A DNA stretch of 64,000 nucleotides from Epiperipatus broadwayi (GCA_028023455.1 JAQFVV010000010.1:1364001-1428000), one strand, 5' to 3'. Positions 4,916 to 57,328 are shown, counted from the stretch's first letter. Notes: generated by a model not told the origin, from the sequence alone. A program made the numbers and translations.

Positions 4916-5053
4916 ATCACATTTCACTTATATAACTCATTATTACCACAATAATTTTCAAATTCATGTGCAATTACAATAAATTACAACCATGATTGGA
5001 AAGTAGCACAGAGCTGAGTAAAGAATTAGCGAAGAAGCAAATTAATTACTCAC

Positions 5054-22300: not shown

Positions 22301-23192
22301 CAGAGAATTCACATTGACCACTGCGGTCCAATCCACGGACAATTATTTCTGGTAGTGGTTGATGCCTACTCAGGATGGTCAGAATATAAACCAGTGAAAA
22401 ACACAAGTTCGGATGAGACGCTGGACAAGCTCATGGAAATTTTTTCATACCACGGGCTACCGGAAACCCTCGTATCCGATAATGGAACCGGTTTCACGTC
22501 TGAAAAATTTGCCGAATTTATGCAGGAATGGGGGATTAAACACATCCTTACCCCCCTACCACCCCCAATCAAATGGACTGGCCGAGAAAGCGGTACAAAG
22601 CTTAAAGTCATCAATGAATAAATTGGGAAAAGGAAGACTCCAAGAGGCAGTTTTCATGGCATTGCTATATCAGCATTCCACACCCACAGCTAAAACGGGC
22701 AGATCACCTGCAGAAAAATACTTAGGCCGGAAATTACGTACAAAGCTCTCAGCAATAATGCCATCAAAAGAGCATCAAATGCCAATTACGACAAACAACA
22801 AATTTTCACCTGATGAACGAGTCTGGGTGAAAAATAATTTAAATAAATCATGGACTCAGGCATACATGGTACGCCATTTAAGTAAACAAGTGGTTGTTGT
22901 CCGTATGGCAGATGGCAAACAATTGCGTAAGCACATTAACCAATTGCGCAAGAGTGCAACAACAGAATTCTGTACTCTGCAATTGTTTAAAAGTAATGAC
23001 AAAGAAAATGATACTCACTATGAAACTAAAAGTGAAACAGAAATCATTACTGCTGACGAAGAAAGTCAAAATAGTGAAGAAAATGAAATAGTCACAGATG
23101 GTGAAATTAAATCACTCCCACACGCAAAGAGGAGAACAAAAATTCCCCTCCGCCTGCACGATTATGTGTTAAGTTCAGAGAAGAAGAAATGA
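19312..23192 (+). pseudogene. gag-pol polyprotein, disrupted
   Basis: Two CCHC knuckles (CYCCGKLGHIAKDC, CRLCKKIGHMARMC), protease IDSGS, RT YFDD, RNase H TDASEYGVG, integrase HEGHPG / IHID / SDNG / AEKAV. Frameshifts near 20415, 22222 and 22553; stops TGA 21918-21920 and TAG 22277-22279. Confidence 0.95.
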
Positions 23193-26200: not shown

Positions 26201-27159
26201 ACACATCAGATTTTAATAACATTGTTTTTATCAGTGTTTTAATTTTTTAATTATTATTTTTTCAACAGTATTTTTTAGCTTGAAATAGAAGTTTATTAAA
26301 TGATAAGTTAAAATAATATGAGATTATATATTAAACAAACAGTTCTTTTTTGCAAAAAGATATATTACTAATATTTTTCCTATTGATTAATTAATTAGAT
26401 TGTTAATTAAATGCTTTTATTGAAGTTGGAAAATCAGTTTGTTTGTTTGTTAGTTTATTTAAGTTTTGATCTTTTTCAAGTTAGAATAAAATTTTAAAAT
26501 TGAAGTTTCCTATATTTAAATTTAATAGAATGATTTAAAATCTGGTATATAAATAATTAATACAAGCCTAATCCATATAAGACACTAATCTTTTTAATAG
26601 ATGATCTAGTTTCTTAGATATGAGAGAGGGAGTAAAATATTAAAAATATTCAATAATTTCACATATTGCAGTTAACAATTATTTTTAGAACTTTAATTTC
26701 TTTTAAATATTACTCCTAAGAGGGCAGTAAAGATTTTTCTTTCAATTTAATAACATTTTAATTTAGTTAAGTTAATTACTGTCAGAAATAAAGAGCAGTT
26801 TTATGCAATATGCATACAAGGAATAGGTAATATTTCAATACAAGTATAATGTTCATACTAAACTTTAGATGTAATTGGAGATTTGATCAAGACTTTCAAG
26901 TTCTCTTCAGCTATCCACTCCATCTTATATAATCAACACAGATGAATAAATTCTGCCCATCCCTTTTTTGTGTATTTAAATGAACATATTAAGATTCTAT
27001 ATATGAGGGATCAAAGCAACTTGAGATCAACAAGGGCTTTGAGAATTCCATCATCAGATTCTCAATAATATGGATAGCTAAAGAGTTAGAGGGTGGAGAA
27101 GATTGAAGTCTGTTCATTAAAGCTTAAAGATTTGCTGTCTTAATATGAAGTGAGCACTG

Positions 27160-29304: not shown

Positions 29305-30059
29305 CCAAATCATTATCTCCCACACTTATATATATATTAAGATAAAAAACCTTCAAATTTTAATGGGTAGGCTTCAATCTTTTGCATTCTCAAACTCTTT
29401 AGCCATCTGTATTATAGAAAATCTGGTGGAATGCTCAAAATTCTGTTAATGCCAATATTGTTGTCATACCCATGTTGACTTTGTCACTTTAACTCCTCAT
29501 AAGTAAAAACTTAATATGTTCATTTAAATATACAGAAGAGGAATAGGCAGAATTTGTAATACTTGAATGTAAATATAATGTATATACTAAATATTGAACC
29601 CTCCCTTCAGCTATCCATCCCATCCCACATTTCATGCACATCTTTGATAAGTCTTTATAAATTCAGTCTTTATTTTAATTAACTTCCTTGGGCAATCAAA
29701 AAATGTAGATAAAGAAAATGGGTCTTATGAAAATGGTAGGTCTTATGAAAGTGTCCACTTTTTTTCTTATGGCATGGTTAATGTTCGTATCTAAATAAAA
29801 CTACATAATTCCAGGTTTTGACTGATATACTTTGGTTTGTTTAGCCACACATGGTATCTTCTGGTAGCAAATTTCGTCATAATTGTTGAATTAGATGTAT
29901 TATTAAAAACTACTTTTTTTAAATTATCAGGCAAACAACAATTTGAAACTATTCTATAACACTAAATTGTAAGAAAGTATTTTAACTAGTAGTTTTCTTT
30001 TTCTATTAGAGATGAAGTTACAGTAGATAATGCATCAAACTTATTCTTTGAATGATTAT

Positions 30060-32888: not shown

Positions 32889-33972
32889 GTATAAAGTCAA
32901 TATCTTCATGATTAAAGTCCCCTGCTGCTTCACATATATGCGCAACCTAGTTGCACGAGTACACAAGGAATGGAGAAAAAGATATTTTCTTTTTTTCCGT
33001 CTGCTTAAATAATTTTTTGTCTTTTGGAGTAATCTGACTGATCATCTGTATCCGGGTGGAAGGTTCTTTATATTATCTACTAGGTTTTATTAACAGTAGT
33101 TCTTTCTAGAATCAATTGTTAATCTGTTATTGATAATCGAATTCCTATGAAATCAGATTTTTCTCATTGTTCAATTGTTTTAATTTATCCGTTTTATTAA
33201 CTAACTATTTTTAGACAGTAGTTTTAGTAACGTAGATTTAAACGCACATTTTACTAGTAATTAATAGATATTCTAATAATTGAAGTTTTACTTTGTGTAA
33301 ATAAATCCAAAATATAAATAAATCTTTTAAAATTAGTTTTATTTTTACTTAAAATAAATCTTTATAACTTTTTTACTTACTTTTTTATGGTATAGCATAT
33401 AAATAGCAGTAATTTAGCATAAGAAAAGATGATCATATGGTATTTAGTATATCTTTTTTTTATTTGCCTTTGAGATTTTTCATAACATTTATGAAAACAA
33501 TACAATAAAATAAAAAATTTACCCTCACAAAAACTGAAATTGCTTCCCTTTTGTCTTCATATTTTACTCTGCACAGAAAAATAAAAATGTCTATTAAAAA
33601 ACAATTTATAGTAATTGTGTTTATTTTATTAATTTCATTTTCAAATTTTTCATCTAACAATTGAAATATATTATCATAATGATTCCATATTAATTTAGAA
33701 TTTTTAATTGGTCTGGAACGTATATTCCACACAATATAATAGTTCAATGAAAAAAATGCTGTTTTGATATAAGCCATTGTTTTAAAATTGGGGATTTTCA
33801 AAGAAAAACTTCTAAAATAAGCAGTTTTTTTAAGAACCAGAACATATAAAAGATAAATATGTTGCAAGGAAATCAAGTCATATATCATATGACTTAATTT
33901 AAACTTGTATTACAAATGTTATATAATGAGTGTGCCAAATAGATCTTAACAAGCTTTTCAGAAGACCCATAT

Positions 33973-34010
33973 CCTCGGACCGGTTTATAGCTCTGGCTTT
34001 CATCAGTAAA
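33973..34010 (-). ncRNA. Minimal hammerhead motif, family A, decayed (G12>T, stem I eroded)
   Basis: TTTA CTGATGA A AGC CAGA GCT A TAAA CCGG TC CGAGG; palindromic ACCGGT in helix III. Confidence 0.7.
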
Positions 34011-34296
34011 GTGCTAGGATATTCAAGCATTAGATTTAAAATACCAGGTCAAGCCCAGCACTTTATCCAATGTTTAACTAATAAGTAGAAAATCTGGAAA
34101 TTTCAGACATCCGTATGTCTTCAAATCCAGCTATCTTATTTAAATAGCCATATGGGCTTAAGTCTTAAGAGCAATAACAATAATTGCAAGGAAATCAAGT
34201 CATATATCATGTGACTTAAGTTAATAAGCTTGTATTACAAATGTTACATGATGAGCATGCCAATAGCTCTTAGCAAGCTTTTCAAAATACCCATAT

Positions 34297-34338
34297 CCTT
34301 AGAAGACTGGTTTCTAGCTCTGGCATTCATCAGTGAGG
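34297..34338 (-). ncRNA. Minimal hammerhead motif, family A, core intact, helices eroded
   Basis: CCTCA CTGATGA ATGC CAGA GCTA GAAA CCAG TC TTCTAAGG. Confidence 0.7.
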
Positions 34339-34835
34339 CACTGTATATTCAAGCATTAAATTTAAAATATCAGGTTAAGCCAAGCACTTTATCCAATGTT
34401 TAACTATCAAGTAGAAAAATCTGAAATTTTCCGACAACCATATGTCCTCAAATCCAGTTATCTAACTTAAATAGCAATATGGGACTGAACTAAGTTCAGA
34501 TGCACTATATATTAAAAGCTTCAGCTGTATAAAATTGTCAAAGGCTTAAGAGCATTATATAACATTTGTAATACAAGCTTATTAAATTAAATCACGATAT
34601 ATGATTTTCTTGCAATTATTGTTATCAAGGCTTTGGCAATTTTATATTGCTAAAGCTATTAATATATGGAGTATCTGAACTTAGTTCAGTCCCATATGTC
34701 TATTTAAATTAGATAACTAAATTTGAAGACATATGGATGTCTGAAAATTTTAGATTTTCTACTTAATAGTTAAATATTGGATAAAATGCTTGGCTTGACC
34801 TGGTATTTTAAATCTAATGCTTGAATATCCTAGCA

Positions 34836-34876
34836 CCTCACTGACAAAAGCCAGAGCTAGAAACCAGTCCAATAGG
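34836..34876 (+). ncRNA. Minimal hammerhead motif, family A, decayed (G8>A)
   Basis: CCTCA CTGACAA A AGC CAGA GCT A GAAA CCAG TC CAATAGG. Confidence 0.65.
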
Positions 34877-35699
34877 GGTATTCTGAAAAGCTTGTTAAGA
34901 ACTATTGGCATGCTCATTATATAAATATGTAAAAATAATAAAGTGCAAGTTTATTAAAAATTATAGATAACAAAAGATTTAGTAGTTGTTCACTGAAATA
35001 CAGTTCTAATAAAATTTAAGTTAACCATTAGTTTTAAGTACAATTTAGATATAAAGATTCAAAACTTTCTAGATGTACATAAAGTAAATATATATGAAAA
35101 ATTTGACACGTTAATCAATATTGTATGCAAATCAAGCTAAAATTTGAATTCAAATTGTATCTTTGGAATTACAATTTCCAAAAGTAAATCAAGCAACAAT
35201 TTAGAGCTTGTTTGATCGATATTTTCTCAAAAATTTGATTATTAACTTTTGAAACAAAATCTTTAAATATTTTCTCTATTCCGCAAATCAAGATGATTGC
35301 CATCGCAGAGATCATAGGTATAAGGCTCATATGCAGAAGTAACTAGCAAGTTAGATATCAAAAGATATAATAACAATATAATTTTAGCAAAAAAGGCAAA
35401 CAGAATCCATATCAAGATTATCAATGTACCACTGATGAATTAATACAACTGGATCTTTTCCCATCCATATGGAAAATTCCAATACTTCAAACTCATGAAA
35501 CTTGGACAGAAAGGCTTTCAAAGATCACAGAATTATTCAGTGAAACAATACCAAGGAATTTATATAGTTTGTTCAAATGTTTTTCCCCCATCCGATCATT
35601 CATGTTTGCAATAACAGATAAATATTGCTTTTTATAAAAATTTCCAAGATTTATTTAAAAAAATAAGCTCCAAAAAGGAATTTATCTCACATATAACAG

Positions 35700-36120
35700 A
35701 TCACCCAAACTCTCAATATACCATAATCAAGTTTAAAAATGAGGAGCAATGTAACACATTCAGAGAATCAATTAAAACATTGAATAAATATGCCTTAGTT
35801 ACAATAAATCCATTAGGAGACAACATTACAATTGAACTAGTAAAAACCATTTATCTAAGCTAATGAGTTTATCAAATTAATGAAGCTGTTTGGAGAAGTC
35901 ATTGATTTCCAAGTGACATTGCTTAAGATTAAACCAATACATGCAAATGAAATCCCATCACAGATTACCAATCAAGAGGCCACATTGTTTATAGTGATAT
36001 ATGGATTAAACTTCAATGCTTTCACTGTATGGAATTTGGACATCTTATTAAACTAAACTGTGCACACTGCAATATGAGAACCATTCTCATGCATAAGTGC
36101 CCAAATCAAAAGAAACTCAA
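35700..36120 (+). pseudogene. LINE ORF1-like remnant (L1/Tx1-type zinc knuckles)
   Basis: IPSQITNQEATLFIVIYG followed, after a frameshift, by QCFHCMEFGHLIKLNCAHC..HKCPN. Heavily decayed. Confidence 0.4.
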
Positions 36121-37962
36121 CAACAAATGGAACAGGTAATATGGATCTAATAGTAAATACTCAGAAAACAACAATAGTATCAAAAATAAAACATCATTAT
36201 TAATCATGGACTTCATTTCCAATGACATACTCTTAAAGGAAACTACTAATACACTGATCAAATGCAAACCAGATCATACCCCCCCCCCTTACTTCACCCT
36301 TGTTTTAGAGAATCAAAAAGCATTAGATGTAATTTTTGTTGCTAGAAAAATACAAGTTATGTTGCAAATTAAAAGAATGACATATATTGCTTTTTGATCT
36401 GGTCAAAACATTTAAGATAAGTAATCAAATAAGTTTATGGCAATTTATGAAAATACTTTATGCATTAAAGTTTATTCATATTATATAACTACTTTTTGGT
36501 AGTACGAGTTGAAACAAATAGAGAATAATAACTTCAACATTATTTTTCAGTTTTATGTTAGTGATCTTGAAACTATTACAAGTAATTTCATAAAGCAAAC
36601 ATGAATATATAAAAGGGTTGTGGTAATGGGTTTTAAATTTCAATCAATTAAAAAGCAAAAATAAGACCATCTTTTTAGTTCCTAGATTTATACAATGTTG
36701 ATTGTTGAATTATTCTTGCCAATTCAAAATATCTATAGAATATCCTTGTTTTGAATGTAATATCTAAAGAATTTGATTAATAAATTTAGTGTTTATAAAC
36801 AATGCCAAGTGCTTATTATTAATCAGTGACGGAAGAACTTCAGGTACCTTTTGCTTAACTTTCTAGATTAAAAGATTATCTCCTATATGAAGATCAGTAT
36901 GAACTTCAATGTACTGATGTTGCATTCAACAGATTAAATGATAGGTTATTTTATTGTAATAATTTCAGCTACATTAATTGTTCATAAAGTTGTTCTATCA
37001 AATTTATTATATGAAAATACATACATGGAATCTATTGCTATGAAATCAGCACATTAAAAATTTTACTCTTATTCAAAAATGCTCAGTAATATTCTGGAAA
37101 GGTCAAACCACTGGGCTATTAATTGATAGGACAATAAACATATTTATCAGTGTGCTGTTTGTGATATTGCACCCATTTTTGTAATAATTTATGGGGAAGT
37201 TTATGCATAATGTGAATTAATTTGCATTATAAAGATTATCTCACTTTCTAAAGAGATGCCTTTATTATGAAAATGTGATTGAAAATAGAATATAGCAGAG
37301 AACCTAACTAAGAAAACCACAACATTCAACTCTTTCAAGATTTGCTGCAGAAAAGTAAAAGACTATATTTAAATGTCATTTTATGTGAATGTATTTATAG
37401 TTCATGGATTATCCTTTATAGACACTTTGTTTTATTTTTTTGTCATCTCATGGAATTAAAATTCATTATTCTTAAAGTGAAAGGATTGTCTTGGTAAGAC
37501 AAAAATTATGGCGAATAATTCTCAAGAACTATAAATCAAACTATAAATACTCATAACAATTTACAATCTAGAACCAAGAGGTTAAATTGAAAAACTATTG
37601 CAGTGTTTACGAAGTCTAGAAAATTATATAAAAGAAAATTTTCCAGGGTGCTACAAAAAAGAAAGAGAATAAACATTTCAAAGTATATACAAGTCTTATA
37701 TTAAGTTGCTGAATCTGGACCACACAAAAGCAAGAACAAAAAATAATGGATAGGAATAATGAAAAGAAACAGTGATTGTTTGAAAAGACTGCTATAGCAG
37801 TTTCCAGAAAGCAAGTGAAAAACATTTTGGATCTAACAACTAAATGAAAATTATTGGATGGACAGGAAAAAAAATCACGCAAGACATACAAAACAGAGAT
37901 CAGTGGAAGTTTTTAGACAACGCTTTCCTCAGCAATGGAGATTTTTTTATCTTTAATAATGG

Positions 37963-38061
37963 TTTTTTTTCCCCATATGTCATAGCATCGGCCGGGACGC
38001 GAACCCACACCCGTCTGCAACCAACTACTTGCTTGCAAGGCAGGTGCGATGACCTCTCGGC
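37963..38061 (-). mobile_element. tRNA-derived SINE, 5'-truncated copy
   Basis: Reverse complement of 60701-60802 with two core differences; A-tail; TAATAATG on both flanks (37954-37961, 38062-38069). Confidence 0.82.
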
Positions 38062-41000
38062 TAATAATGTTTAAATTGTGAATATCATTGTTATATATAA
38101 TTAATACAAAAAATATTTAATCAAACAAAGAATTGAACTAGAATAATTGCCAATTTAATTAAACAAAATGTTTTGCACTTATAGGTAAATTATTCAAAAG
38201 CTAAAATATTCAATTTATTCGGAAATATTTTATCAGTGCACTGCTTGATCTTATTTTAAACTAATTGAGTTCATTTTAATACTTTTGAAAAATTTTATAC
38301 TTAATCAGCTGCAAATTTTTTTTTCTCTTCATTTAATATTATAATACATTTAAATTAATCCATATAAGTTAAGTTGTTACTTCAAAAATTATAAATTCTT
38401 CACTCATATAAAAATAAGTGTAAATACATATATATTTAAAATTATATGTAGATAAAAATAATTAATAAAGTTACATACCAGATATGTATATTTACAAGAA
38501 AAATTAATTAATAGAAATTTAAATCTGGGTGGAACTAAAGAAAATTTTTAAAGTACAACATTTTTCAAGCAGTTTTTTCAGATGGATAGCATATAGTCAA
38601 TCTATACAATCTTTGAATATGAGCTGATTAAATATCTGGCTGTTTTTAACTAGCATGTCAAGGAAGTTCCAGAAAATCTGGATTGGCCAAATAATTGCAA
38701 AAAAAAAAAAAAAACCAACAATAATACAATGCAAACAATGATAAAAACAATAAAATACACATACAAGCACAAAATCAGGTTTCAACTGCAACAAGCAAAA
38801 TTTAAAATATTTCTGAACAGATGAGATGAAAATATCTGTTAAGTCTAAAAAGAACTTGTGGAATAATACTATATTCAATTATATGCTTTCTAAATCTTGG
38901 ATAACTAAAAATTATATGTATCATAGTCATAAGACACTATAATATAACTTTTACATCAGGAGCATTCTAGAAATTCATGAAAATTAATAAAATTCTACAT
39001 TAGAAAATTCTGTTACCATAATAACTAGTTCCTAATATCAAGATAAGATAGTTCAAATGATTATAAATTACACCACTGATGCAATATGAATTCAGCTCTT
39101 AATAAATTTCTCCTTATTTAATTTTAGATTTCTATTTATAGCCAAATGTATTTTACATACAATTAATTCTTGCAATATCTAAAAAAAAAAAATTCTTTTT
39201 TTTAACACATAAATATTTAAAAATATATTAAAAAATATGGACATTCTTTTTATTAACATTACAATACAATTCTGTTTTTAGTCGTAATATCTCAAGATTT
39301 GCTATATTGTCAAAATAAAAAAAGTTCTTAAGATTGATGGCATAAAATGTATTGTAATTTATGTTTGCAATTAGTTAATTTCTCACATGAGTAAAAATAT
39401 CAATATTTTACTTTTTCTACTTAAGTCCCTCTCCCCCCATGAAAAAAAACCAATTGATTTTTTTCTATAAAATATTCTTTGCTTTACCACACATAAAAAA
39501 AAAAAAGCAACATGAATTTCTTATGATAGTTAACATCAGCCTAGAGACACTACATTAATAGGGTTAATCAAAAATCAGATCAGCTTCTGGCCTTCTTCAG
39601 TAGACAGTTTGAATAGCTCAATCACTAACCAACTTTAATATTCAAGCTAATGACATAAAAGTTTCAGCCCTTTATGGTTTTGAATCCAAACATTGATAAA
39701 TAATTCTGGTACTGGTTTAATAAATATTTTAATGACCTCATTTATTTGATAAGTGTGGAATTTCTAACTCTTTTGCAAAATTATTGATATATACCAAAAA
39801 TAAAGCACCACATGACTTTCCAAAATTAGTTAATATCAGTATTAACAATAATTTGTATCACTCTATTCTAGAACTTTTTATGAAAGCATGAGCAATCAGT
39901 AGGCGACCAGCATCAACTATTGATGATATTCAGTGAGAGTATCCATACTCTGGTGTTTATTGATTATTTATATTGGCTTAGATAATTCTAGAAGTGTTAA
40001 TGAAGATATTAAATATAAAACTCATGACTTTTTTTCTTCACAACAGCCCTTCTTCAAAAAATGCTAGTATTGTATAGACTTCAAATATGTAGTTGCAGAT
40101 TTAGATCTATATAAGTAGACAAAAAAATAGGCATAGATTACAAATCTTAAGTGTTAAAACTTTCAAATTATTACTTTAAATCGTATAACAAAATAAAGGA
40201 TGCAAAATGAGTATATACAATTCAGTGCTCCTCACTTAAAAAATAAATCACCAAATAATCTAAAGGTTGGTATGATATGCTTACATAGATGGCTGTAGAA
40301 CAGTGAGTAATATGGATTATTGTGACTAATGCAGGATTTTTTTTTACTGATTTTATATGCTGCCATTTATGGGTGAATGAAAACTATTAATCATTTTCTT
40401 GTGTAATTGATAAAAATCCATTCACCCTATATTAAAATTTCAACAATTACTGTACATCTACATTCCCATTTCTGATCAAATAGATCTGATCTTTCTGATG
40501 TATGTTCATAGTTTACTGATAATTCATATAGTGTTACTAATTCCTTTTTTTCAATCCTATTTTTATTTAGAATATATATTGCATTGCTTTGTTGATTATC
40601 AAAATGAGTTTATCACTTATATTTAATTAATAGTATATACATTTAATAGTTAACTGAATTCATCTAATTAATAATACTAAAAAGTGTGATTAGAAATATG
40701 AACATTATGATTAAATTTCATTTATATCTTGGACTGATACTATCATCTAGTTGAATTCAATTTTTTTTAAAAAAAAATTCGAAATTTGTTTATGCTTTCC
40801 AAAATATATTCAACTGTTAATAAAGGTCAGGATAATAATTTACAGATGAAAGTATTTAGAAAAATATAAAGTGAATTTTTCTAAAAACATTTAGTAATTC
40901 AAGCAGATGATGGATATAATCCAACATGTAACTATATATAAACTGCCACCGTCACAAACTTTCAGACAATCATGGCAGTTGTTTACAATTTAATACTTTC

Positions 41001-42089
41001 TTTTTAGTATTTCTGAATCTTTTTATTATTGTCTCAGAAATGTCATCATAATTCTCAAATAAACATAAATGAAAACTCAAATTTATAATTAACTACATCA
41101 AATTCACTGCACAAACTAATTGACCAATCTTAAAATTTTTTAATGTTCACCTATTAAATTAATATATATGCTTTTGTCTGAATATTATTTTTTTAATGTT
41201 TATTCATTAGCAACACATCATAATTTTGTAATCATTAGATTTCTAATATGAGTATTTTTTCTGATATTCCCATTTAAAAAAGATATTTTAACATTCTAAA
41301 GTTATGTATTTAGTACAAAATGCATCAATTTTTATTATTTAAAATCTATGTCAGTATGTAAGACGAATTTATAAAATGACCATATTTAAGACATTTTGTC
41401 ATATCTAAAGTACATTCAGTAATTTGACTAAATTTTTATTTGCAATAAATACGACCTTACTTTAGTCACAATAATGACTTATTTCATAAAAATTGGGAAT
41501 TAAAAAACCCCCCAGAGATATGTGGTTAAAAGTGATGGAAATATAACAACAAGAAATTTTAAAATATATAAATTTGTTTATTTTTTTTTACAAATGAATA
41601 CATCTATGAATTGCCCAATCTTGTAATTTCTTCTAATTTTTCACTTAAGGAACAATACAATGGTTGCAGTTCATTATTCAAATGTCCAGATGAAATATCG
41701 GACTGGTTTTGCTAAAAAAAAAAAAAAAAGAAAGAAATAATGATAATAATGTCAGACATTGGCCATGCTCATTTTTATTTCCTAAATGTATGATTCTGAT
41801 TCAGGAGTTCTTTTTCAAGAAATCAAAATTATATCTTCAGGAAAACAATCTTATTAATTGCAAGCTTCTTAAAAATGATATATAATAAAAGCAGTTATCA
41901 AGCAATTTGAATGTAACAAAATGAATATACACATACTTTATGTATTGTATTACAATACATATAATATTGATATAATATTAATCTAAAATTTGATATATCA
42001 AACATTATTATAAAAAGACTAATATCAGAAAATATACAGAACTATTTAGTTTGATGGTAGAACACTCCCTATCAAGCTTGAAATTCAAA

Positions 42090-43365
42090 TCCAAGATGAT
42101 GAATTATTTTCATCATTTATTATTAAAGGTTGAATGTTTAGAAAATTTTAAATTTTATTTAAATTTTTCAAAAACAAACAAGTTATAATATCACACAAAT
42201 CGACAATACAAGTAGGTAATTACACATTTCAAATGTATTATTCTTGTTGGCCTGATCAGTGACAATGTTAGCATAGGAATTAAATTAACACCCTTAGATT
42301 CTTGAATATTGAATTTTAAGACAATGTGTTAATTAACTGAGTTATTCTGTCAAAGGCAGCAGTCAGGAAAAATTTCATATTTATCTACGAGGACAAATTC
42401 AAATCCTCTTGATCTCCCTAATTTTTTTTATTAATACTTTTTTCTAACCACAAGGTTAATTAGAGGCTTTTCAGACTTTATGTATTGCTACACTGGGTTG
42501 ACTTATAGGATTATTTGCCATTGTCATATGAACAGATTCATTGAATTTTATTTTTTCCACATTTTCCTCTTTATCCAATATTTTTGTATTTTCCCAATTG
42601 AACATATTTTCATTAGTATATACATGATCTGCTACTGTAGATATATCAGTTTTTTCTCTTTTAATCATTAGTTAGTGTTCTTTAAATTGCCATTCAACAG
42701 GGTGAAAGGGCTCATAAATAAACTTCTTTCTAAATTTGTGTATTTCATAAGCAGTTTTTGTTTTTCAGCACACCCAGTTTAGGCTTTGTAGAAGTTAGAA
42801 TTCTTCAAAGAGTAATATAGTTTTGGAAAACTGTTCTAATATTATATTGACTGCAGATTTTCTTTAATTTATCTGACATTCCTACAATATCAATAATTGC
42901 TTTTTCCTTTTGGTGGGGTTTTTTTTGTTGTTGTTGTTGTCTAGTAAAGATTTTCTTGATGACAGTTGAAAAATTACCAATCTTCAAGAGAATTTGTTCT
43001 AGGTAAATCTTTTCATTTTCCAAATCACTGATTACCAAACAAAATTCCTTTGCTGTTCCATAGTGATAGTATAATTTTATGTTTTGTGCTTCTGGTATGA
43101 TTGGATGTATATGCCACATGCTTGGCAGTGTGTGCTGGTTATCATTGTTTTTACTTTCCCTTGAGGGAGTCTTGTCACAAGAACATCTAAGAATGACAAT
43201 TTTTGTTCTCATTCTGATTTCATTATAAATTTAATTGATGGAGCTATATTGTTAATGTGAATCCAGAATAACTGTATTCTTGCTTCACAATGTAGGCATA
43301 CCACAAATCTATCAACATAACTAAGCCATACTTTAAGCAGAAATTGAGTAGTATTTATGGCTGTC
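42090..43365 (-). mobile_element. Third Penelope-like copy, 5'-truncated (RT end, GIY-YIG, 3' pLTR)
   Basis: KVWLSYVDRF RT motif near 43300; STVADHVYTNENMFNWENTKILDKE (42471-42668); 42090-42420 is the reverse complement of the pLTR at 2085-2450. Confidence 0.82.
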
Positions 43366-43399
43366 TAGATCAAGTTACAACCAAAAATTCTAAAAAAAA

Positions 43400-44700
43400 T
43401 TATTGGTTTATTTAAAGCAAATATTAATATTACTAATTCTTCTATCTAGTGAAGCTAGTTATTAAATTTATCCACTATTTTTTCCCATGCAAATTTTATA
43501 AATACAATTCTTATAAATTATATGTATCAAATTTTGTTTTATAATGATTAATGTTTCATTGAAAGAGATATATACACATGTAAAGTTAAGTTTTAAATAA
43601 TAATAGACAGAATAAAGATACAACATTAACTGTACAGTAATAAAATATTTTTGATATAATAGAAACTTTATTATTTCAGCTAGATACTTTAAACTATACT
43701 TGATAATAATATAAGGTTTTAGCATAATATTCAAACACATGGGTGAGTGTGCATGAATGTTTTATGTGGTTGAATGTATTTTAAAATGAAATATTTTAAC
43801 AAATTTATTATAAGTAATAATTGGATTTATTCAGCATGATGGGAACTTTAAAGAAACCAGAAGAAAATGAAAAGAAAAAATAATTTAATATTTTAACAAT
43901 ATTAAATCATTTATTTTATAAAACAAGAATGTCTATTTATTGCATTTTAATTATTAATTAATGTAATCTGGTATTTAATATTTTGAAAGAATATTTGCCC
44001 AAAATTTTTAAAAAATGAAATCACAAATTTTGGCACTATAAGCTTAGAAAATTTCCAAATATCACCTGCTTCTTGTTTCTAAGCAATAGTGGCAGAATAT
44101 TCGTGTAAAAATCTAAAAAATGAAGAATTTTGGTAAAATTTATGATCTCATTCATCATATGTATGACAGGAATCTATAAATACACCTATGTGTTAAAAAA
44201 TTGTTTAGTCTTTAATTAAATTTTGTGCAGAAGGACTGCATAGGATTTAAATTCAAAATTAGCCATCTTGGCATCCTGCACTGCCTCTCTAATGGCAAAT
44301 GTTCCTATATAGTGTCCTGAATGAAGAAACTACATGTCTAACAGTGTATATCATTCAATAATGAATTTAAAAAGAATGATAGCCAAATAATTGAATTTAA
44401 CTATAAAAACTTTCAAGAGTGCTTCATGGAATGTTACATTTTATTTGAATTGCATTGTTTATTCATCTCTCCAAAACAGATATTATTTGCTTGGAATTTA
44501 TATTTGCTATATCAACATAAAGCTTCAAATGAGTATATGTGGTTTAATGGAATGAATTGCTTTATATTATATTTACAAACAAATGAATTGCTTTATGTTA
44601 TATTTACAAATAAACTACCTAAAGTTTTGGATATTAGTTTCAAACTAATGCATCCAGTGGATTAATATACTGTTTAATACTACAATAATCTAATATTATG
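43400..44700. repeat. Diverged repeat unit, copy 1
   Basis: 43440-43740 matches 49165-49446 plus 49920-49950; 44050-44380 matches 49960-50200 and 56010-56360. Confidence 0.7.
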
Positions 44701-45039
44701 GATAATTATTACAAAAATGATTGTTAAGATTTATATTCATTGATATTTTGACTTCAGAAATATACTTAGAGAAGCCTTAGCAAAATAATTGTTGTGTTTA
44801 TACTGTCTAAGGAATATAAAACAAACAAGTATAAGCTTGTCAAATGTTGTTTGAAAACTGACCATTAATGGATTTTTATTTACTTACAAATGTAGTCTTC
44901 ATCCTTAAGATGTCAATAATTTAAAATTGTGAATATGTGGATAATTATTTCTTGGATATTTTTAAAGACTAAGAATTATAATTTTAAAGATACAATATAG
45001 TTATCAAATTTTTTAAATTTTATAATATTTAATGTTTAT

Positions 45040-48000
45040 TGTTCTATAAAACTTCTCAAAAAAAGATGTGATAAAGATAAAGGTAACATATTATATTTCA
45101 AAATAGAAATAAAGCAAATGAATAAAGACTTACAAATTAAAACTAAAGTAAAATTAAATGATGTAAAAAGAGACATAGAGAAAATAATAAATGAATCTAA
45201 GTTAGAATTAAAAGAAACTCGCAAATCCTAAGCTAAATTCAGAGGGGATATAAAAAAATTACAGATAGATGTGAAAAAAATGAATGGAAAATCTAAAATC
45301 TAGCCTGACCAAATAAGTAAAAACAATAAAAATATAACTGAAAAACTAAAAATCTTTTAAAAAAATTTAAATTTAAGCAACAAAGCTACATAGAAAAACA
45401 CATATAACATTTAAAGTGTTCTTTAATTAAAGAATGGAAGATTAAAGATATTAATATTAATTTAAGCAAATGCACTATAGCTGCAAAAGAAATTAATTTT
45501 CTTGGACATGTGATAAGAGTCCATGGTATTAAACCACATTATACTAAAATATCAGTTATTTAAAGTTTTCCACTACAGTTTTAATCCTCCTTTGGATTAT
45601 GTAACTTTTATCACAAATGGAAGTGGAATAACAACTACTCGCATGAATTTGAGTGCATAAAATCTAGATTTTTGAAGCAGGTTATTCTATCATACCCTGA
45701 TTTTAATAAAACTTTGTATGTACAAATCGATAGAAGTGGTTTTGGTCTAGGGGTTATACTATGTCAAGATAATGATCAGCAGAAACAAATAAATTTTTTA
45801 AGCCTTCTTAAAAATGCTGAATTGCACTACTCAACAACCGAGAAGGAAGCTCTGGCTGTCATATGGGCATTTCAAAAATTGTCAATTTTTTACTTGGGTC
45901 AAATGTAATTGTTCTCATTGACCACAAGAGCCTAAAAATTTTAAATAAAAGCTATTTAAATAATGAATGTTTAATTAGAAGGAATCTGTTCCTACAACAA
46001 TTTAATTACAAGATTCAGTATTATAAAAAAAAGTAAAAAAAAAACATTATAACAGATGTCTTTAGTCACCATACAATAGAAGTAAAAAAATTTTCATCCA
46101 GACTCAGAAAACATTACCATAACAGGCCTTAATTTAATGATTGCTGACACTATTTGAAATTAAGTCAGATTATTGCTAGTTTATCCAATAAATTAGAATC
46201 TGAAAGCAACAATAGATTGATCAGTAGATTAAGAAAAAAATATAAAATGTTATAAAACATGTTCATCTGAAAGACGGATGAAACCAATGATCAGTCTTTG
46301 GAAAGTAATTGTTCTCTCTGGCCTTAGAAATAAATTGATATACTATGTTCATTGTTTATATTATGGGCCTAAAAAAATTGAATATATTTTGAGAAAATTG
46401 TTCTACTGGCCTGGCATGTACACCTCAATAATGAATTGACTAAAATATTGTGAGATCTGTCTTAGATCAAAATACTCTAATATGTCATAGGCAGGAAAAC
46501 TCCAAACACATATTGTCAAATAGAACTAATGAAATCCTATCTATTGATTTCTATGGGCTCATCCCACCATTTAATAGATATAAATTCATCCTACTAACCA
46601 AGGATGTGTTCTCAAAATATGCAACCACGTATCCTGTTACTAAAGTTGATATCAAAGATGTTATAAAAAGCTTACAAAATTACCAATTTCCCCTAGTAAC
46701 AAAACCAAAATCTATATTAACAGATCACAATACCTCTTTTATATCCAACACATGGAAAAGATGGGTAGTGTAATATCTGCACTTACGACTGTGCCAAGGT
46801 TATAACTGCGAGTCATACTGTGCGGTCAGCAAATAACGTTATACAATTCCCATGCTGTTCTTTTCCAATGAAGCTCTCCAACGACTTGGTCTGCCACGAA
46901 GCTCTCCAAACGAATTGGTCTGCAACGATGCTCTCCAATGAATTGGTCTGCAACAAAGCTCAGCCACGGATGCTCTCCCACGAATGGTCTGCACCGACTG
47001 CTCTCCAATGAATGGTCTGCAAGCGGATGATCTCCAAACGCATGGTCTGCAACTTGCTACTGCGTGACTGTTCTCTACTGCTGTCTATATTGCACTGCTC
47101 GATGTTACCCAGTCTTCTTATCACTCTCTGACAACTGCAACGATTAATCAATGCACTGACCAATAAGGTAACGTCTCTTATCTAGAAACATTTGTAATTA
47201 GCAAATATTTCTAGGAATTGTCGATCGCCATTACATCAATGCACTAATTAAATTCCTCAGCTATCAGAGCGCGATCTAAAAACAGCCTTACGAATAAATT
47301 CTAGTTTTTCTGGAGTGCACAAAAATGTCTGCCATTTTTACAAACACTACACACCTCCCTCCACTCCAGAAAAACCCTTGTTGCTAACGTTACTAATTGG
47401 GATTGACATTTTCACCCGGTTTCTCCGTCTACGGCTAAACTTGTAGTTCAACGTATTCGCTACTCCCAGGTTCCAAATGCGACTGCGCCATTGTAATATC
47501 CGCACTTACGACTGTGCCAAGGTTATAACTGCGAGTCATACTGTGCGGTCAGCAAATAACGTTATACAATTCCCACGCTGTTCTTTTCCAACGAAGCTCT
47601 CCAACAACTTGGTCTGCCACAAAGCTCTCCAAACGAATTGGTCTGCAACGATGCTCTCCAATGAATTGGTCTGCAACGAAGCTCAGCCACGAATGCTCTC
47701 CCACGAATGGTCTGCACCGACTGCTCTCCAATGAATGGTCTGCAAGCGGATGCTCTCCAAACGCATGGTCTGCAACTTGCTACTGCGTGACTGCTCTCTA
47801 CTGCTGTCTATATTACACTGCTCGATGTTATCCAGTCTTCTTATCGCTCTCTGACAACTGCAACGATCAATCAATGCACTGACCAATAAGGTAACGTCTC
47901 TTATCTAGAAACATTTGTAATTAGCAAATATTTCTAGGAATTGTCGATCGCCATTATGTCAATGCACTAATTAAATTCCTCAGCTATCAGAGCGCGATCT

Positions 48001-48600
48001 AAAAACAGCCTTACGAATAAATTGTAGTTTTTCTGGAGTGCACAAAAATGTCTGCCATTTTTACAAACACTACAGGTAGAAAATCAAAATATTAAACACA
48101 AAATGAGCTCTATTCAAAATCCACAGTCCAATTCATTGGGCAGACTATTTAAAGTTTATTTACAAAGTAACCATAAAACTTGGGTCAACAAATTAAGAGA
48201 TAGGACATTATATTAATATGATTCAAAGCAAGTGCACTAAATTTTCACCCATTCAGTTACAATTTGGACAGAATAAACCATTATTAATAAAAACTCCACT
48301 TCCTATCATGAGACTGATATTAGCAAGCCATGATAAACTTGAAAAATATCAGTTGTAAATGAATATCTCAATCAACTCAACAAACATATGTATTTAAAGT
48401 TGATGGTTTTATTCTAGCACGCATCCCCGAGGCTATCAACTCACAAAATCACAAGTTAAAAATGTTTTAAATTTTATGAGAAATCTTTCCAAGTCAAAAG
48501 TAAAATAGGAGATAATGCATTGTTACTAGCAACTCTAAATAGAATACAAGCTACCTACAATGCATGATGTTTAAGGCATATGTCACATTTGTGATAGATG
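45040..48600 (+). mobile_element. Old degenerate Gypsy element, interrupted by a TRIM
   Basis: Coiled-coil gag (45050-45400), RT EINFLGHVI, RNase H ILSYPDFNK..YSTTEKEALAVIWA (45672-45908), integrase ILSIDFYG..KDVFSKY..ILTDH (46450-46768). The integrase resumes in frame after the TRIM as ENQNIKHKMSSIQNPQSN. Confidence 0.8.
46769..48074 (-). mobile_element. TRIM (terminal-repeat retrotransposon in miniature)
   Basis: 583-bp LTRs 46769-47351 and 47492-48074 (TGTAAT..ACTACA; 16 differences). The 140-bp non-coding interior has PBS TGGCGCAGTCG (47490-47480) and PPT GGAGTGGAGGGAGGTG (47367-47352). 5-bp TSD GGTAG. Confidence 0.93.
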
Positions 48601-49558
48601 TTTACATTTATTCTATAGTTTAAAATGGCTTATTTTCTATAAAAAACAACAACAAATTATTAGATGTAAGCATAACTAGGAAGTTGATATTTTGTAAAGA
48701 AGATTAAAAATTTATTGTATTGATAACGATGCATTTGGAGAAAATTAGATGAATAATTTAAGATAAATAAAATACTGTGCATTCCAGAATTATATGGTAA
48801 AAGTTTAAAATAATAACTCATTCATTAGAAACAATAATGTATATTATTAAAGAAAATGTTCCCCATTTCCCAAAAAAACAATTTATCAACTTTAATATTC
48901 AAAGGTCGATAAGTTTAAGATGTTAATATTATTATAGGCATTATGAACTTGATGCTACATTTATAAAATTATATAAGCTAAGAATCCCCCCTCCCCAGAA
49001 AAAAGTAAATGTAATAATATTTTTAATATCTAGATTAATAGTCACAACTATATACTGTATTCTAAAAAATTATTGGCTTATCAATAAAGCAAACAAATAT
49101 TATTGGTTATTACTATTATTAGTGTTGGAAATAAAATAATTGGAAGTAATATTAATATTATTATTTCTTCTACCTAGTAAAGCAAATTATTAAATTTACC
49201 CAAGATCTCTTTCCATGCAGATTTTATAAATACACAGGGACTTAAAAATTATATGCATCAAATTTTGCTTTATCATGATTAAAATTTCATTGAAAAAAAT
49301 ACATACATATGTAAAGTTAAGTTTGAAAAAATAATAGACAGAATAAAAGAATACAACATAAACTACAATAGGAATAAAATATTTAAAATTATTGTGGTAT
49401 ATTAATAACTTTATTATTTCAGTTAGACAATTTATACTTAATAGTATTGATAAAAAAATCAAGTCAGATGACCTAATTTTAATAAAGCTCGTATTTACAA
49501 ATGTTATATATAGAATAAGTTAAAAACAAACTCTTAACAAGCTTCAAAAATACCCTCA

Positions 49559-49600
49559 ACCTCAGACCGCGGTTTCTGCATCTAGCGTCATCAGTGAGGT
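49559..49600 (-). ncRNA. Minimal type I hammerhead ribozyme, core intact
   Basis: Exact reverse complement of 49811-49852. Confidence 0.85.
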
Positions 49601-49810
49601 GTTAGGGAATAAAAATACTAGAACTAGTCTAGCATTTTATCAATGCCTAACTATTGAGAAGAAAATCTGAAACCTTCAGACATTTAATGTCTGAAGGTTT
49701 CAGATTTTCTTCTCAATAGTTAGGCACTCATCTGAAGGTTTCAGATTTTCTTCTCAATAGTTAGGCATTGATAAAATGCTAGACTAGTTCTAGTATTTTT
49801 ATTCCCTAAC

Positions 49811-49852
49811 ACCTCACTGATGACGCTAGATGCAGAAACCGCGGTCTGAGGT
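49811..49852 (+). ncRNA. Minimal type I hammerhead ribozyme, core intact
   Basis: ACCTCA CTGATGA C GC TAGAT GC A GAAA C CGCG G TC TGAGGT: 6-bp helix I, complete CUGAUGA/GAAA/GUC core, palindrome ACCGCGGT in helix III. Predicted cleavage after C49846. Confidence 0.87.
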
Positions 49853-52669
49853 TGAGGGTATTTTTGAAGCTTGTTAAGAGTTTGTTTTTAACTTACTCTA
49901 TATATAATACTTAATAGTAATATAAAGTTTTAGCATAATATATAAACACATGTGATACAATCCTATTAACATATCTACATGTTTAAAATTGTATAATCTT
50001 TTTTATTAACAGATTGTGAATGAACTGTATTGGAACTAAATTTAAAGTTAGACATATTGGCATCTTGCAATAAAATGGTAATGGAGTAGAGAACCAGATA
50101 ATCATTTGCTTAATGGCAAATGTATCTTAAAATAGTCCTTAATAGAAAACTAAATATCTAACCATGTTCATCATCTTGTAATACACTTTAAATGGAATGA
50201 AATGTTAAAACTTGGATTTAAATATGAAAGTTGAACCTAGTTCGGGAATGGTACTTTTGTTTAAACCATGTTGCTCACTTATCTATTCTCCAAATATTTT
50301 TTTGATGTTTAATTACTACAACAGTCTAAAGTTTTCTGGATAAATACTTATGTATTGAACAATTATTATTAAAAATGAATTTTAACAGTATTGAATTTTA
50401 TCTTAGTCTGAAAATAAAACTTTTATTGGATAATTATTGTTTAAATACATTTTGTAAACTAATGAATTTATATTCATAAATATTGAGAGAAAAGTTATAA
50501 TTTATGAATGCTATCCCTTAAGAGATTAAAAACTATGACCCATACTTAGGAAATAAAACAACTTATTGTGATTCTCTGGGATAATTTTAACTCACTATTA
50601 GTGGATTAAAGGGATTATATATTTTATTCCACACTATGATTGTATTGTATTTTAAAGCTCAATCTTCATTATTAATTACTCTATTCTAAGGATTAAAATT
50701 TGTTTCACCAATCTATTAGGATTTTACCAGAATAAATATTTTGAACTTCTTAAGGTTGGATTAATTTTCAACTATAAAGATATAGTATATTTCTCATATT
50801 TTTTTAATTGTTATATCTATAGTTATCTTGTTCGGTGAAAGTTTTCCAAGGAACAAGGTATAATAAAATAATATACAGGTAGTATATGAAATGTACAATT
50901 ATAATTACATATAAATGTGTTATTGACTTCTTATACTACAGAGACTGGTTGTTAGTATTTAAAGTTAATTAATAATGGTTTATAATTAAGATATATTTAA
51001 TATTTAATTGATCTATTATTTTAATCCTGTTTCTACAATAAAAACTATCTAAAGCATATAATTTAAATATTATAAATATACCCTTATTTATCCACATGGC
51101 AACACTCAAGATTTTATAAAAATTATAATGCTTATTCAATTATACTTGTGACATTGATACTTGTATCACTGAGTTAAATTCCTGACAATATTTTATTATC
51201 ATTTTATTCATAATGTGAGCTTGATAAGACTCTTATGGAATGCTACCAGTTCCTATTGGAATCAGAATCATTAAAGCCATGTTTTAGAAACAATATTATA
51301 AGTTGGGTTAATGTTTTCCTCTTATATGAAATAACTACATTTAAATTCAGATACCTAAAAGAAATGTGTCTTATTATTTAATTAAAGATATGATAAAACA
51401 TTCTTTTGTTATTATTCATAAGTAAGTTCTTTGAATAGATCTTAATAATTCTCTTCAATAAATTGTATTGCTTTATATCATATCAAGTTATATCACACAT
51501 TCAGATATCACAAGAATTTTCATAATCACTGTAGAGAACTTGTTATTATTGTTATTTTGTTTATTTAAAATATTTTTTATTCTTTATTGTTAATAAGTTA
51601 ATTATCTGGTCTTTGTCTTTAATTAGGTAATACTCATCAACTACTAATTTTATAAATAAATATTTGTCACATGATTTTATAATTATTATGCATTATTTAA
51701 AAGGCTTACTGTTTTATGAGAGATGTTGTTCTATATTTTATACACTTACACCATCTTCATCTCAATATTTTGTTGGTTAAGATATAAATTGAGTATAATA
51801 AAATGTGCATTGTTATTTCATCATATCAATAATAATAATTTATAATTTTAAATTTTAAGAATAGTATTTATTATATTTTAATCTTATAACATTGACATAA
51901 CTTTAAACCAAATTTATATAATATGAAAGCTTAGAACAAACTTGCTAGCCCAAATATATGAATGTTATAGGATTTATTTATTCTTGGATAGTAGAACTCT
52001 GAGAAATTATTGTGATTAGTTATAAATACACATCTGTATAGTGCATCCTTAAAATAAATATTTGTTTATTATAAAGAATCTTGTAAAGTGACCATCCAAG
52101 TCTTTTAAACTGTTAAGCTCAACCTTATTTGATCGGTATATTTTTATCATATATTTTTAGTCAGTTACAATTTGGCATCGCAAACACATATATAATTAAA
52201 TTGATTATTAAAATTATAAAATTACATGCAGTTTCTTTCTTCAATTCAGTTAAAATTTTGATGTGACCTTAGATAATGATTATTTTATAATCCTTATAAT
52301 AATTAATGAACATAAAATTTAAATATTATCTTGGAACTTTCATAACTGCAATATAAGGTGTTTAATGTGTATATGTTTAAAAAGATATAGCATTCCATAT
52401 ATAAGTTATATTAAAAAAAATATTTATTAATGATAATACTAATTAATTTTATTGGTGCAGTCTATAAAATATTTGTTTCTAGGACAATCAAAGAGGATAG
52501 TCAAGAGGTAGATGTTTATGTAATATTCAGATTGATATTAAAAATTGTACTGCTTATTTACTTATTTATATTACAATTGTTTATTTATCTTATTTAAAGT
52601 ACAAGTTTTTACTAACATTTATCTCTAAGTATGATTAATACTACTGATAATTTTTTGGTGGATCTGAAA

Positions 52670-54800: not shown

Positions 54801-55574
54801 TAAGTTGATAATTTTAGCAATACTAATATAGTTAAAGTGTTTGTAATTTTAGACTAGAGTTCATAAAAACTTATTTTTAAAGGCCAAGAATTTTTTTTTT
54901 TGTTACGGAAGGACAAAATATAATGAAATTTAATATATGAATTGCCAATAATAATCATAATTTAAAAATATTTTATTGGTTTATAAATATTATTACTATT
55001 ATTTCTTATAACATCATTATTACCATTGCTGCAAATAACAATATTAAATTTATATTATTAATATTACTTTATATGAGAAATTATTAAACTAATCCATGAT
55101 GGTGTCTCATATATATTTTATAATTACAGTGCTTTTTAATATATGTATGAAATTTCTTTTTATCATGGTTTATATTTAGATTAAAATATTCATACTCATA
55201 AAATTAATTTTAAAACAGCAATACATAGAATAAAAAGGTATAATACTAACAATAATAATAAATTATATAAAAATAGTATCAGTATAGTAATAACATTATT
55301 ATTGTACATATATAAATAAAATTACAATGAATAATGACAGAAAGTTTTAACATAATATTTAAATATATATGTGTGTACAAATAGTTCTAGTTCTTAAATG
55401 TATCTAAATTTGAAAAGATATAATAACAAAATATTTAAATAAATTTATTAATATTGGCAATAATATATTGATTATAATGAAAACTTAAAAATAAAGTAAA
55501 ATCATTTATTTTAATATTTACAATATACATATTTGTTTGTAAAATAATATGTACTTTATTTTTATTAATTAATA

Positions 55575-55875
55575 TAATATATAGGGTATATGAGCACAGA
55601 CTTTCACACGACCCATCACTCTCCACACTATCTCATAACACTGATATATGTTGAAAAGATAAAAATCACCAATATGTAATAACAGAAATACACAGGCAGT
55701 AATCTGGACCAACTGATGATTGCTGGTTTAGCATGAAATATGTATATTGGTGATTATTTATCTTTTCAACATATATGTGTTCAAGTGTATCAGTGTTATG
55801 AGATAGTGTGGAGAGTGGTGGGTCGTGTGAAAGTCTGTGCTCATATACCCTATATATTACATATATAGACACAGG
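55575..55875. mobile_element. Fold-back hammerhead element, family B (superficially MITE-like)
   Basis: Inverted arms 55575-55675 and 55744-55859, with a hammerhead motif spanning the spacer and the start of the right arm. TSD not resolved. Confidence 0.72.
55708..55751 (+). ncRNA. Minimal type I hammerhead ribozyme, family B, near-intact
   Basis: ACCAA CTGATGA T TGCT GGTTT AGCA T GAAA TATGTA TA TTGGT: 5-bp helix I, intact core, 4-bp helix II, very short helix III. Predicted cleavage after A55746. Confidence 0.78.
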
Positions 55876-57328
55876 TATATAATTTTATGCCTGTGTGTTT
55901 CAGTTATTAATTAATATAGTAAAATATTTAAAATATTTTGAAATATTATTTTGTCATTTTAAAATAACTTCATTACAAATTCGGTGCTACAAATTCTTAC
56001 AACTTCTAAAGATCAGCTGCTTCATATTGATTCTGGCAGCAATGATAAAATTTTCTCATAAAATGCAGAAAGAGTTAAAAATTTTAAGAAAAAAATGATC
56101 TCATTCATTATGTATTGCAATCCCATAAATACATCTGTGTTCAAAATTGTTTAGTCTTCTTTATTAACAGATTGCATGTGAACTGAATTAGGCTTAAATT
56201 TAAAATTAGTATTATCGGCATCTTGCAATAAAATGATAATAAAGTAGAGAACCAGATAATCATTTGCCTTAATGACAAATGTTCTTTGAAACTGTCCTTA
56301 ATAGAGAACTAAATATCTAACCATCTTCATCATCTTGTAATGCATTTTAAATGGAATGAAATTATAAAACTAGGATTTAAATGAGAAAGTTGAAAGTAGT
56401 TCAGCAATACTACTTTTGTTTAAATCATATTGTTCACTTATCTACTCTCCAAATATTTTCTTGATGTTATAATTATTACCACAACTTATTTTTCTGGATA
56501 AACATCTACATATTGCACAATTATCGATAAAAATGAATTTTATCTAATAAATTTTTTCTTTGTCTGGAAAAAAAATTATATTAAATAATTACAGTTAAAA
56601 TGAATTTTTTAACTAATGGGATTTACCTTCATAAATATTTAGAGAAAAGTTATAATTTATGAATGTCATCCTTTAATAGATTAAGAACTATGTTCCATAC
56701 TTAGAAAATAAAACTTATTGAGATTCTCAGGGATAAATTTTAACTTACTATTGGTCAATTCAAAAAAGTATTTATTCCAAAACTAGTAAATAAAACAACT
56801 TAGTCTAAATTAATATATTTACATTAGTCTAATTTTGGAATATTTTAAACTCACTATTATTGGATGGTATTTAAATCTCAATCTTCATTATTAATTACTC
56901 TATTCTAAGGATTAAAATGTTTCACCCATTCATTAGGATTTTACAACTTAAAATGTTGAAAGATTTACTCATTTTCAAATATTTTCAAAGACTGTGCAAG
57001 AATAAATATTTTGAATTTTTTAAGACTTTGAATAAATTTTAAACTATAAGGATATATTATATTTCTCATATTTGTTTATCATATTTAGTTATCTTGTTCT
57101 GTGAAAGTTCTCATAAGAAGCAAGGTATAATAAAAAATGTAGATAGTATTTGAAATTTATGATTACAATTTAGTATAAATGTGTGTTATTGATTCTTTTT
57201 ATTATGGAAACTGATTGATATTTAAAGTTAATTAATAATGGTTTATAATTAAGATATATTTAACATTTTCTTTTATTGATCTATTATTTAAATCCTGTTT
57301 CTACAATAAAAATAAAAACTATCTAAAG

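Follow-up and report, generated by a model that had tools for sequence, protein, structure and literature searches.

Non-coding mini-elements of Epiperipatus broadwayi inserted head-to-head with two fixed ends, probably through Penelope-like retrotransposition

Insertions of Penelope-like elements (PLEs) are known to consist of partial tandems with 5' truncation, at the 5' end of which an inverted copy, itself 5'-truncated, is often present (Craig 2021, PMC8557442). A tail of 30-40 bp is found on one side only of such insertions, for which endonuclease-mediated resolution was suggested as the origin, and the palindromes are a known problem in the assembly of PLEs (Craig 2021, PMC8557442). Here we describe two loci of this general layout, located at positions 33863-34920 (locus 1) and 49447-49906 (locus 2) of a 64,000-nucleotide (nt) stretch from Epiperipatus broadwayi (GCA_028023455.1 JAQFVV010000010.1:1364001-1428000). 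This whole stretch, referred to below as the window, is AT-rich, with a G+C content of ~23-40%, and resembles eukaryotic DNA of the invertebrate type. The two loci are independent insertions of one non-coding family, designated family A, and the shared footprint was examined in a sample composed of these two loci and one locus of a second family, family B.

Two further studies of PLEs provide the closest published footprints. The duplications described by Arkhipova measured 9-10 bp (9 bp around a whole unit), a 31-bp tail was present on one inverted repeat, and an inverted repeat was 37 bp shorter than the full ones and included a TATA palindrome (Arkhipova 2013, PMC3846280). Palindromes were also present at the inverted junctions, from which self-priming was proposed, and terminal repeats alone were found to mobilise foreign sequence in trans (Arkhipova 2013, PMC3846280). 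In vitro, the purified Penelope protein of Anolis cuts and extends both target strands, favoring AT-rich DNA, and uses two internal reverse transcription (RT) start sites near a stem-loop, the tail being the sequence between them (Frangieh 2024, PMC11167929). In the Anolis element the hammerhead cut is at +26 of the open reading frame (ORF) and the main start site is at +111 to +118 (Frangieh 2024, PMC11167929).

A second group of related systems is formed by the non-LTR (non-long-terminal-repeat) retrozymes, which share with family A the non-coding, AT-rich repeats of a few hundred nt, the type I hammerhead motif, the head-to-tail tandems, the duplications of more than 4 bp and a proposed dependence on PLEs (Cervera and de la Pena 2020, PMC7229834; Li, Clavereau and Pollet 2026, bioRxiv 10.64898/2026.07.22.740005). 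These papers on metazoan retrozymes contain no inverted copies, tails or exact ends (PMC7229834; bioRxiv 10.64898/2026.07.22.740005). Non-LTR retrozymes are recognized as non-coding tandem repeats of ~170-400 bp with a type I hammerhead in each unit, and family A has this composition, with tandem units of 322-378 nt that harbor a hammerhead motif, decayed at locus 1. A more distant parallel is the twin priming of LINE-1 that Ostertag and Kazazian are said to have described in 2001, in which the second nicked strand reportedly primes internally on the RNA and leaves, within one duplication, an inverted segment whose 3' end points outward. This segment is said to derive from another part of the same RNA, farther upstream, and internal priming reportedly has no fixed position. 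In contrast, the two arms of each locus described here represent one and the same sequence, and independent loci share the same internal site.

Each family A locus is a head-to-head structure enclosed as a whole by one target-site duplication (TSD), and positions 33863, 34920, 49447 and 49906 are the first and last element bases between the TSD copies. Locus 1 is flanked by the 10-nt exact repeat ATAAATATGT at 33853-33862 and 34921-34930, the final T of which may instead be the first base of the element. The main arm of this locus lies on the minus strand and is composed of two units in tandem, namely m1 (33863-34184, 322 nt), which has a 3' tail at 33863-33918/33922 with a 14-bp hairpin, and m2 (34185-34552, 368 nt), which is without the first 10 nt of the unit. 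The length of the main arm is thus two units minus 10 nt. The inverted arm, on the plus strand at 34553-34920, is one unit long and has its tail-less end at CATTAT(ATAA); it starts with a TTATATAA site plus the tail of an upstream unit (34553-34615) and covers exactly the interval between two successive TTATATAA sites (one unit, 368-372 nt). The m1, m2 and inverted units are 85-87% alike.

Locus 2 is flanked by the 13-bp repeat ATACTTAATAGTA at 49434-49446 and 49907-49919, and its arms are single truncated units. The main arm (49447-49685, minus strand) is a 5'-truncated unit with a tail at 49447-49504 that contains an 11-bp hairpin, and the inverted arm (49686-49906, plus strand) is tail-less and ends in CTATATATA. 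The locus forms an almost perfect palindrome centered on T49685, with both arms stopping at one nucleotide and 99% identity between them over 177 nt. A 41-nt tandem duplication (49690-49730 and 49731-49771) is confined to the right arm. Two mismatches close the first copy of this duplication, which adjoins a 6-bp hairpin, and it looks like a backward slip on the template during synthesis of the complementary DNA (cDNA).

A third insertion with the same geometry, from family B, was present on the plus strand at 55562-55918. Its 15-bp TSD, TTATTAATTAATATA, is found at 55562-55576 and 55904-55918, and the structure between (55577-55903) comprises a tail-less inverted arm at 55577-55672, ending within a (TA)n run, and a sense copy at 55673-55903, which contains a hammerhead motif with its core at 55713 and has a tail of ~46 nt that includes an 11-bp hairpin. 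To evaluate the three duplications, a script identified the longest exact repeat directly adjoining both ends, and 5000 random placements of equal span served as the comparison. An equal or longer match was obtained in 26 of the 5000 placements for locus 1, and a match as good in one for locus 2 and in three for family B. The duplications therefore differ in length (10, 13 and 15 bp), and each surrounds the whole head-to-head structure.

Alignment of the two family A loci, which are only 68-78% alike and thus represent different subfamilies of one family, showed that their ends are nevertheless held in common. The tail ends are homologous to the nucleotide, and the tail-less ends agree within 0-4 nt at an aligned TATATAA, the 1-4 nt of uncertainty there arising because the target starts with the same letters. 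As written in the window, the tail ends read ...GACTTGATTTCCTTGCAA at locus 1 and ...GACTTGATTTTTTTATCAA at locus 2; in the RNA sense the hairpin is followed by 8 nt, as in ...CCTTGCAA and ...TTTATCAA, respectively. The elements begin 8 nt outside AAATCAAGTCA, the segment at which the first-pass annotation had placed the common start. The tail of 56-60 nt is present at one end only of both loci, with the inverted arm stopping 56-60 nt short of the tail end at locus 1 and 57-58 nt short at locus 2. In the better-preserved copies the 3' tail forms a strong hairpin, with z values of -4.65 (m1 of locus 1), -2.18 (locus 2) and -5.43 (family B). The inversion points are not the same in loci 1 and 2.

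The orientation of the arms was read from the hammerhead-like core CUGAUGA...GAAAC...GUC. A pattern scan and alignment showed that this core lies on the minus strand in the left arms and on the plus strand in the right arms, so that the RNA-sense 3' ends face outward. The claim of the first-pass annotation that two loci share both end points, in a head-to-head arrangement with outward 3' ends that recurs in family B, is therefore borne out. The tail-less site TATATAA (33919-33925 and the homologous sites) takes the form of a TATA box with the same reading on either strand, and an initiator-like TCATAT lies in the tail ~30 nt downstream of it. A similar bidirectional TATA is found in Penelope terminal repeats (Arkhipova 2013, PMC3846280).

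The state of the target before insertion could be examined in the window itself, as locus 2 and family B occupy different copies of an AT-rich host repeat that is present three times (43420-44280, 49148-50300 and 54986-56459). The third copy is empty at both sites; for the flanks of locus 2 it is the copy at 43420-43741. In this paralog of the locus 2 target (43650-43745, plus strand), the flanks are contiguous at 43695/43696 and the target ATACTTGATAATA occurs once, the single copy of the 13-bp TSD sequence being at 43696-43708. The single target copy and the contiguous flanks indicate that what was inserted comprised the entire head-to-head structure together with one copy of the target. At the family B site this paralog is likewise empty, with TTATTAATTAATGTA occurring once and a 33-nt indel adjoining it. 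The same empty-site test was applied to Penelope-mediated insertions in Adineta (Arkhipova 2013, PMC3846280). The contig depth of the flanks, ~470-2500 compared with 33, suggests that the host repeat has tens of genomic copies.

Abundance was assessed with Logan contigs from four public runs aligned to 49330-50020, including 4096 contigs aligned from a DNA run of the same organism. The summed contig depth rises from ~10^2-10^3 in the flanks (single contigs ~33) to 10^5-10^6 inside locus 2. The steps fall exactly at 49447-49453 and 49906 and amount to two to three orders of magnitude, and family A is accordingly a high-copy family. In the DNA contigs the tail bins (49474-49521) are 3-5 times deeper than the element body, an excess that could stem from 5' truncation, as a 3' bias, or from a tail module common to other families or to an autonomous partner. 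At the loose ends of 19 contigs a conserved sequence continues beyond the tail, indicating that many genomic copies are arranged in tandem, and copies in all four runs extend beyond the center of locus 2. Family contigs were also present in runs of other organisms and in a run labelled RNA, in which DNA carry-over is possible. One contig from organism F, with similarity ending at 49501, was considered as a further tail-less end and set aside as ambiguous, 6 nt of its flank resembling the tail.

The hammerhead motif of locus 2 is intact in both arms (~49565-49607 in the main arm and 49804-49858 in the inverted arm). The minimal hammerhead of the PLE type has the form CUGANGA...GAAA...UH with helix I and a palindromic helix III through which a dimer can form, position 9 being followed by an unpaired base and G10.1 being paired with C11.1 (Cervera and de la Pena 2014). 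The locus 2 motif shows the core, a helix I of at least 6 bp, an extra base after position 9 and GC/GC in helix II, and its helix III is the 8-nt palindrome ACCGCGGU. Two copies are predicted to cofold as a double hammerhead at -41.3 kcal/mol, compared with twice -15.5 for the single copies, an arrangement published for minimal hammerheads of the Penelope type. Across thousands of contigs, CUGAUGA varies at a level of at least 10% only at the free position N7, and no such variant was listed for the GAA core. All three hammerhead copies of locus 1 have core or helix mutations: in m1 the core is decayed (GAAA to UAAA) and helix I is broken, m2 retains the core with the helix III palindrome lost, and the core of the inverted arm is decayed (CUGACAA). 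A metagenome scan with the locus 2 hammerhead core gave 0 matches. On the basis of motif and predicted fold, the family A ribozyme is a putative minimal hammerhead of the dimer type.

When compared with endonuclease-bearing PLEs, the insertions described here show the same variable short duplication around the whole unit, partial tandems and AT-rich targets, together with the inverted 5'-truncated copy, the outward 3' ends, the one-sided tail, palindromes at the inverted junction and a TATA-like palindrome in the repeat. They differ in having no reverse transcriptase or endonuclease ORF, in units of only 320-380 nt and in the absence of a sequence link to an autonomous element. No conserved ORF was identified in the family A units, no ORF of at least 30 amino acids lies wholly inside locus 2, and a tRNA scan identified no tRNA-derived head. 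The likeness extends to the Poseidon PAc element of Anolis, which also has two fixed 3' ends separated by a tail, start sites beside a stem-loop, use of both target strands, AT-rich targets, little or no primer homology (1-4 nt here) and a hammerhead cut 60-120 nt upstream of the start sites. At locus 2 the predicted cut site lies upstream of both ends, by 60 nt for the tail-less end and by 118 nt for the tail end. In contrast to PAc, the start sites here are deduced from genomic ends only, the stem-loop is AU-rich rather than AC-rich, and the two ends always differ at the three loci, whereas the in vitro strands are equal in start site.

On this basis, loci 1 and 2 are probably single retrotransposition events of a retrozyme-like, non-autonomous PLE derivative, inserted by the reverse transcriptase and GIY-YIG endonuclease of a PLE. 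The endonuclease would make staggered cuts in an AT-rich target, giving rise to the 10- or 13-bp duplication, and both freed 3' ends would prime reverse transcription of the element RNA. One strand would start at the far 3' end, just past the hairpin, and produce the tail-bearing main copy, and the other would start ~57 nt upstream at UAUAUAA and produce the tail-less copy. The two cDNAs would then grow toward each other and join head-to-head, at locus 2 by annealing within a natural 14-nt self-complementary palindrome (in the family consensus, GACATTTAAATGTC) and at locus 1 through a 2-nt overlap. Two start sites and priming from both strands are suggested here by analogy with published PLE biochemistry, and two RT start sites that bracket the tail would explain the two fixed ends (Frangieh 2024, PMC11167929). 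The first-pass annotation had attributed the fixed ends to a defined, Penelope-type and target-primed mechanism rather than to random rearrangement, a reading that the variable TSDs, the empty-site paralog and the match to the published footprint support. Its further proposal, that such elements routinely integrate as hairpins, would generalize from a few loci, and many genomic copies run on in tandem. The footprint itself is that of an already published PLE mechanism and is not new, accounts of the tail, the inverted copy and the palindromes at the junction in PLEs dating from 2005-2021.

Several observations weigh against this assignment. At 56-60 nt (~46 nt in family B), the tail exceeds the 30-40 reported for PLEs, three loci are a small sample, and the window yielded no autonomous PLE whose tail matches, such as the intact Penelope family that the first-pass annotation proposed to search for. 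The motif also departs from that of the non-LTR retrozymes, being a minimal dimer type in which helix II is very short (2-3 bp, an additional A preceding G12), and it matches no Rfam model: no hammerhead family reached threshold in searches of the whole window at gathering thresholds and of both loci at E up to 10. The best Rfam match was RAGATH-1-hammerhead (13.4 bits, E 4.2), and the other matches were hairpin look-alikes of microRNA models. In addition, contigs break at the center of the locus 2 palindrome and none bridges it, leaving the center without independent confirmation, and the same stop nucleotide in both arms of this locus is explained more simply by a snap-back of one cDNA than by two independent ones.

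Such a snap-back is the leading alternative, possible although rather unlikely. Here a single target-primed reverse transcription (TPRT) would start from the tail end, the cDNA would fold back at the palindrome, and the product would be resolved ~57 nt before the end at the TATATAA palindrome, perhaps by the endonuclease with its preference for AT. The arms of locus 2, which mirror around T49685 within the 14-nt palindrome at 99% identity, fit this course well, as does the proposal of self-priming from junction palindromes (Arkhipova 2013, PMC3846280), and a resolution step has a precedent in the endonuclease-mediated origin suggested for the tail (Craig 2021, PMC8557442). However, the junction of locus 1 is unmirrored, as the sequence to the right of 34552 complements a stretch 300 nt leftward, and folding back there would need a 300-nt loop with only 2 nt (CA) in common. 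The 41-nt duplication in one arm only also argues against it, and resolution is made unnecessary by the in vitro result that tail-less and tail-bearing ends both arise as RT start sites with no resolution step (Frangieh 2024, PMC11167929). Two cDNAs joined at their 3' ends fit all three loci and are preferred, a choice that three loci cannot settle. Of the sequence put forward in the first-pass annotation (TPRT, strand inversion and resolution at a TA palindrome), the fold-back thus suits locus 2, is a poor fit for locus 1, and does not need its last step.

The regular unit lengths at locus 1 raise a more doubtful variant, in which a circular monomer RNA would be copied by rolling-circle reverse transcription from both target strands, each stopping at its own start. 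The near-whole unit lengths of both arms could reflect such copying; by chance, both would be expected with a probability of <1%, a post hoc estimate. Alternatively, this regularity could result from stops at protein-bound start sites on a multimeric RNA. In family B the inverted arm (55661-55672 paired with 55744-55755) reaches the complement of 55744. The hammerhead cut predicted after 55746 is 2-3 nt away, as would be expected of a template RNA that began at the cleavage site, and this end points in the same direction as a circular template. The inversion points of family A are far from the cut site.

It is very improbable that the loci result from two successive insertions, the second copy having homed in opposite orientation into the 5' end of an existing one. 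PLEs are often nested, and the PLE endonuclease reportedly recognizes the tail-bearing sequence of its own element. Penelope fragments are cleaved in vitro by their own endonuclease (Frangieh 2024, PMC11167929). Against this, a single duplication surrounds the whole structure, and the inner junction shows no nested duplication of element sequence. The two arms of locus 2 have 99% identity and share one truncation point, and in the paralog both are missing together. An equally slight chance is given to a palindrome that formed after a simple insertion, or to an assembly artefact in the form of a fold-back chimera. The trouble that PLE palindromes cause in assembly, the lack of a contig across the center of locus 2 and the depth minimum at ~49690-49760 are all in keeping with an artefact. 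However, folding back a finished insertion would not produce outer ends that differ (tail versus none) and each abut one TSD copy, a read-derived contig matches the junction of left flank and tail at locus 2 without differences, and the same layout recurs at three loci of different age. Finally, a DNA transposon of the miniature inverted-repeat (MITE) or foldback type with long terminal inverted repeats is scarcely tenable, as the long inverted arms and flanking direct repeats are accompanied by TSDs of varying length, by ends made asymmetric by the 56-60-nt tail with no symmetric terminal repeats at any of the three loci, by arms that are whole element copies also found as head-to-tail tandems, and by a hammerhead strand polarity of the retroelement type; the fixed TSDs and symmetric terminal inverted repeats named in the first-pass annotation as signs of this class are thus not what the loci display.

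The window was also searched by BLAST for further copies of the family A units, of their tails or of the family B tail, and none was found. At its left edge, positions 1-4917 hold a decayed head-to-head pair of putative Penelope-like copies. The left one is on the minus strand and runs off the window, and the right one, which has direct repeats at 2079-2451 and 4599-4917, is on the plus strand; the order of the ORF pieces on the two strands confirms the head-to-head arrangement previously noted for this pair. Its Penelope-like identity is suggested by look-alike clusters alone, which are language-model based and carry RVT_1/DUF8422 and GIY-YIG; a Pfam search of the ORF pieces gave no match, and BLAST within the window detected no similarity of the pair to family A. 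Other features include a Ty3/gypsy-type retrotransposon at 19312-23192, in which open frames encode a gag zinc knuckle, protease, reverse transcriptase and RNase H, and an inverted repeat pair at 26948-27016 and 29487-29555 (69 nt, 83% complementary, 2.5 kb apart).

The dependence of retrozymes on PLEs has so far rested on co-occurrence and terminal-repeat similarity, and work on the mobilisation mechanism has been called for (Li et al. 2026, bioRxiv 10.64898/2026.07.22.740005). The insertion scars described here provide direct structural evidence for the integration of hammerhead mini-elements by PLE machinery. No new kind of system is revealed by these loci; what the window adds is clean scar evidence for retrozyme-like elements and a tail longer than those published. 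The two fixed ends would mark the likely RT start sites on a very small RNA of 240-380 nt, and such an RNA would be a convenient minimal substrate for the biochemistry of the poorly understood Penelope integration cycle. A circular template, if true, would be the first genomic trace of circular-RNA-templated retrotransposition of the Penelope type and would tie the ribozyme to the mobility of the element.

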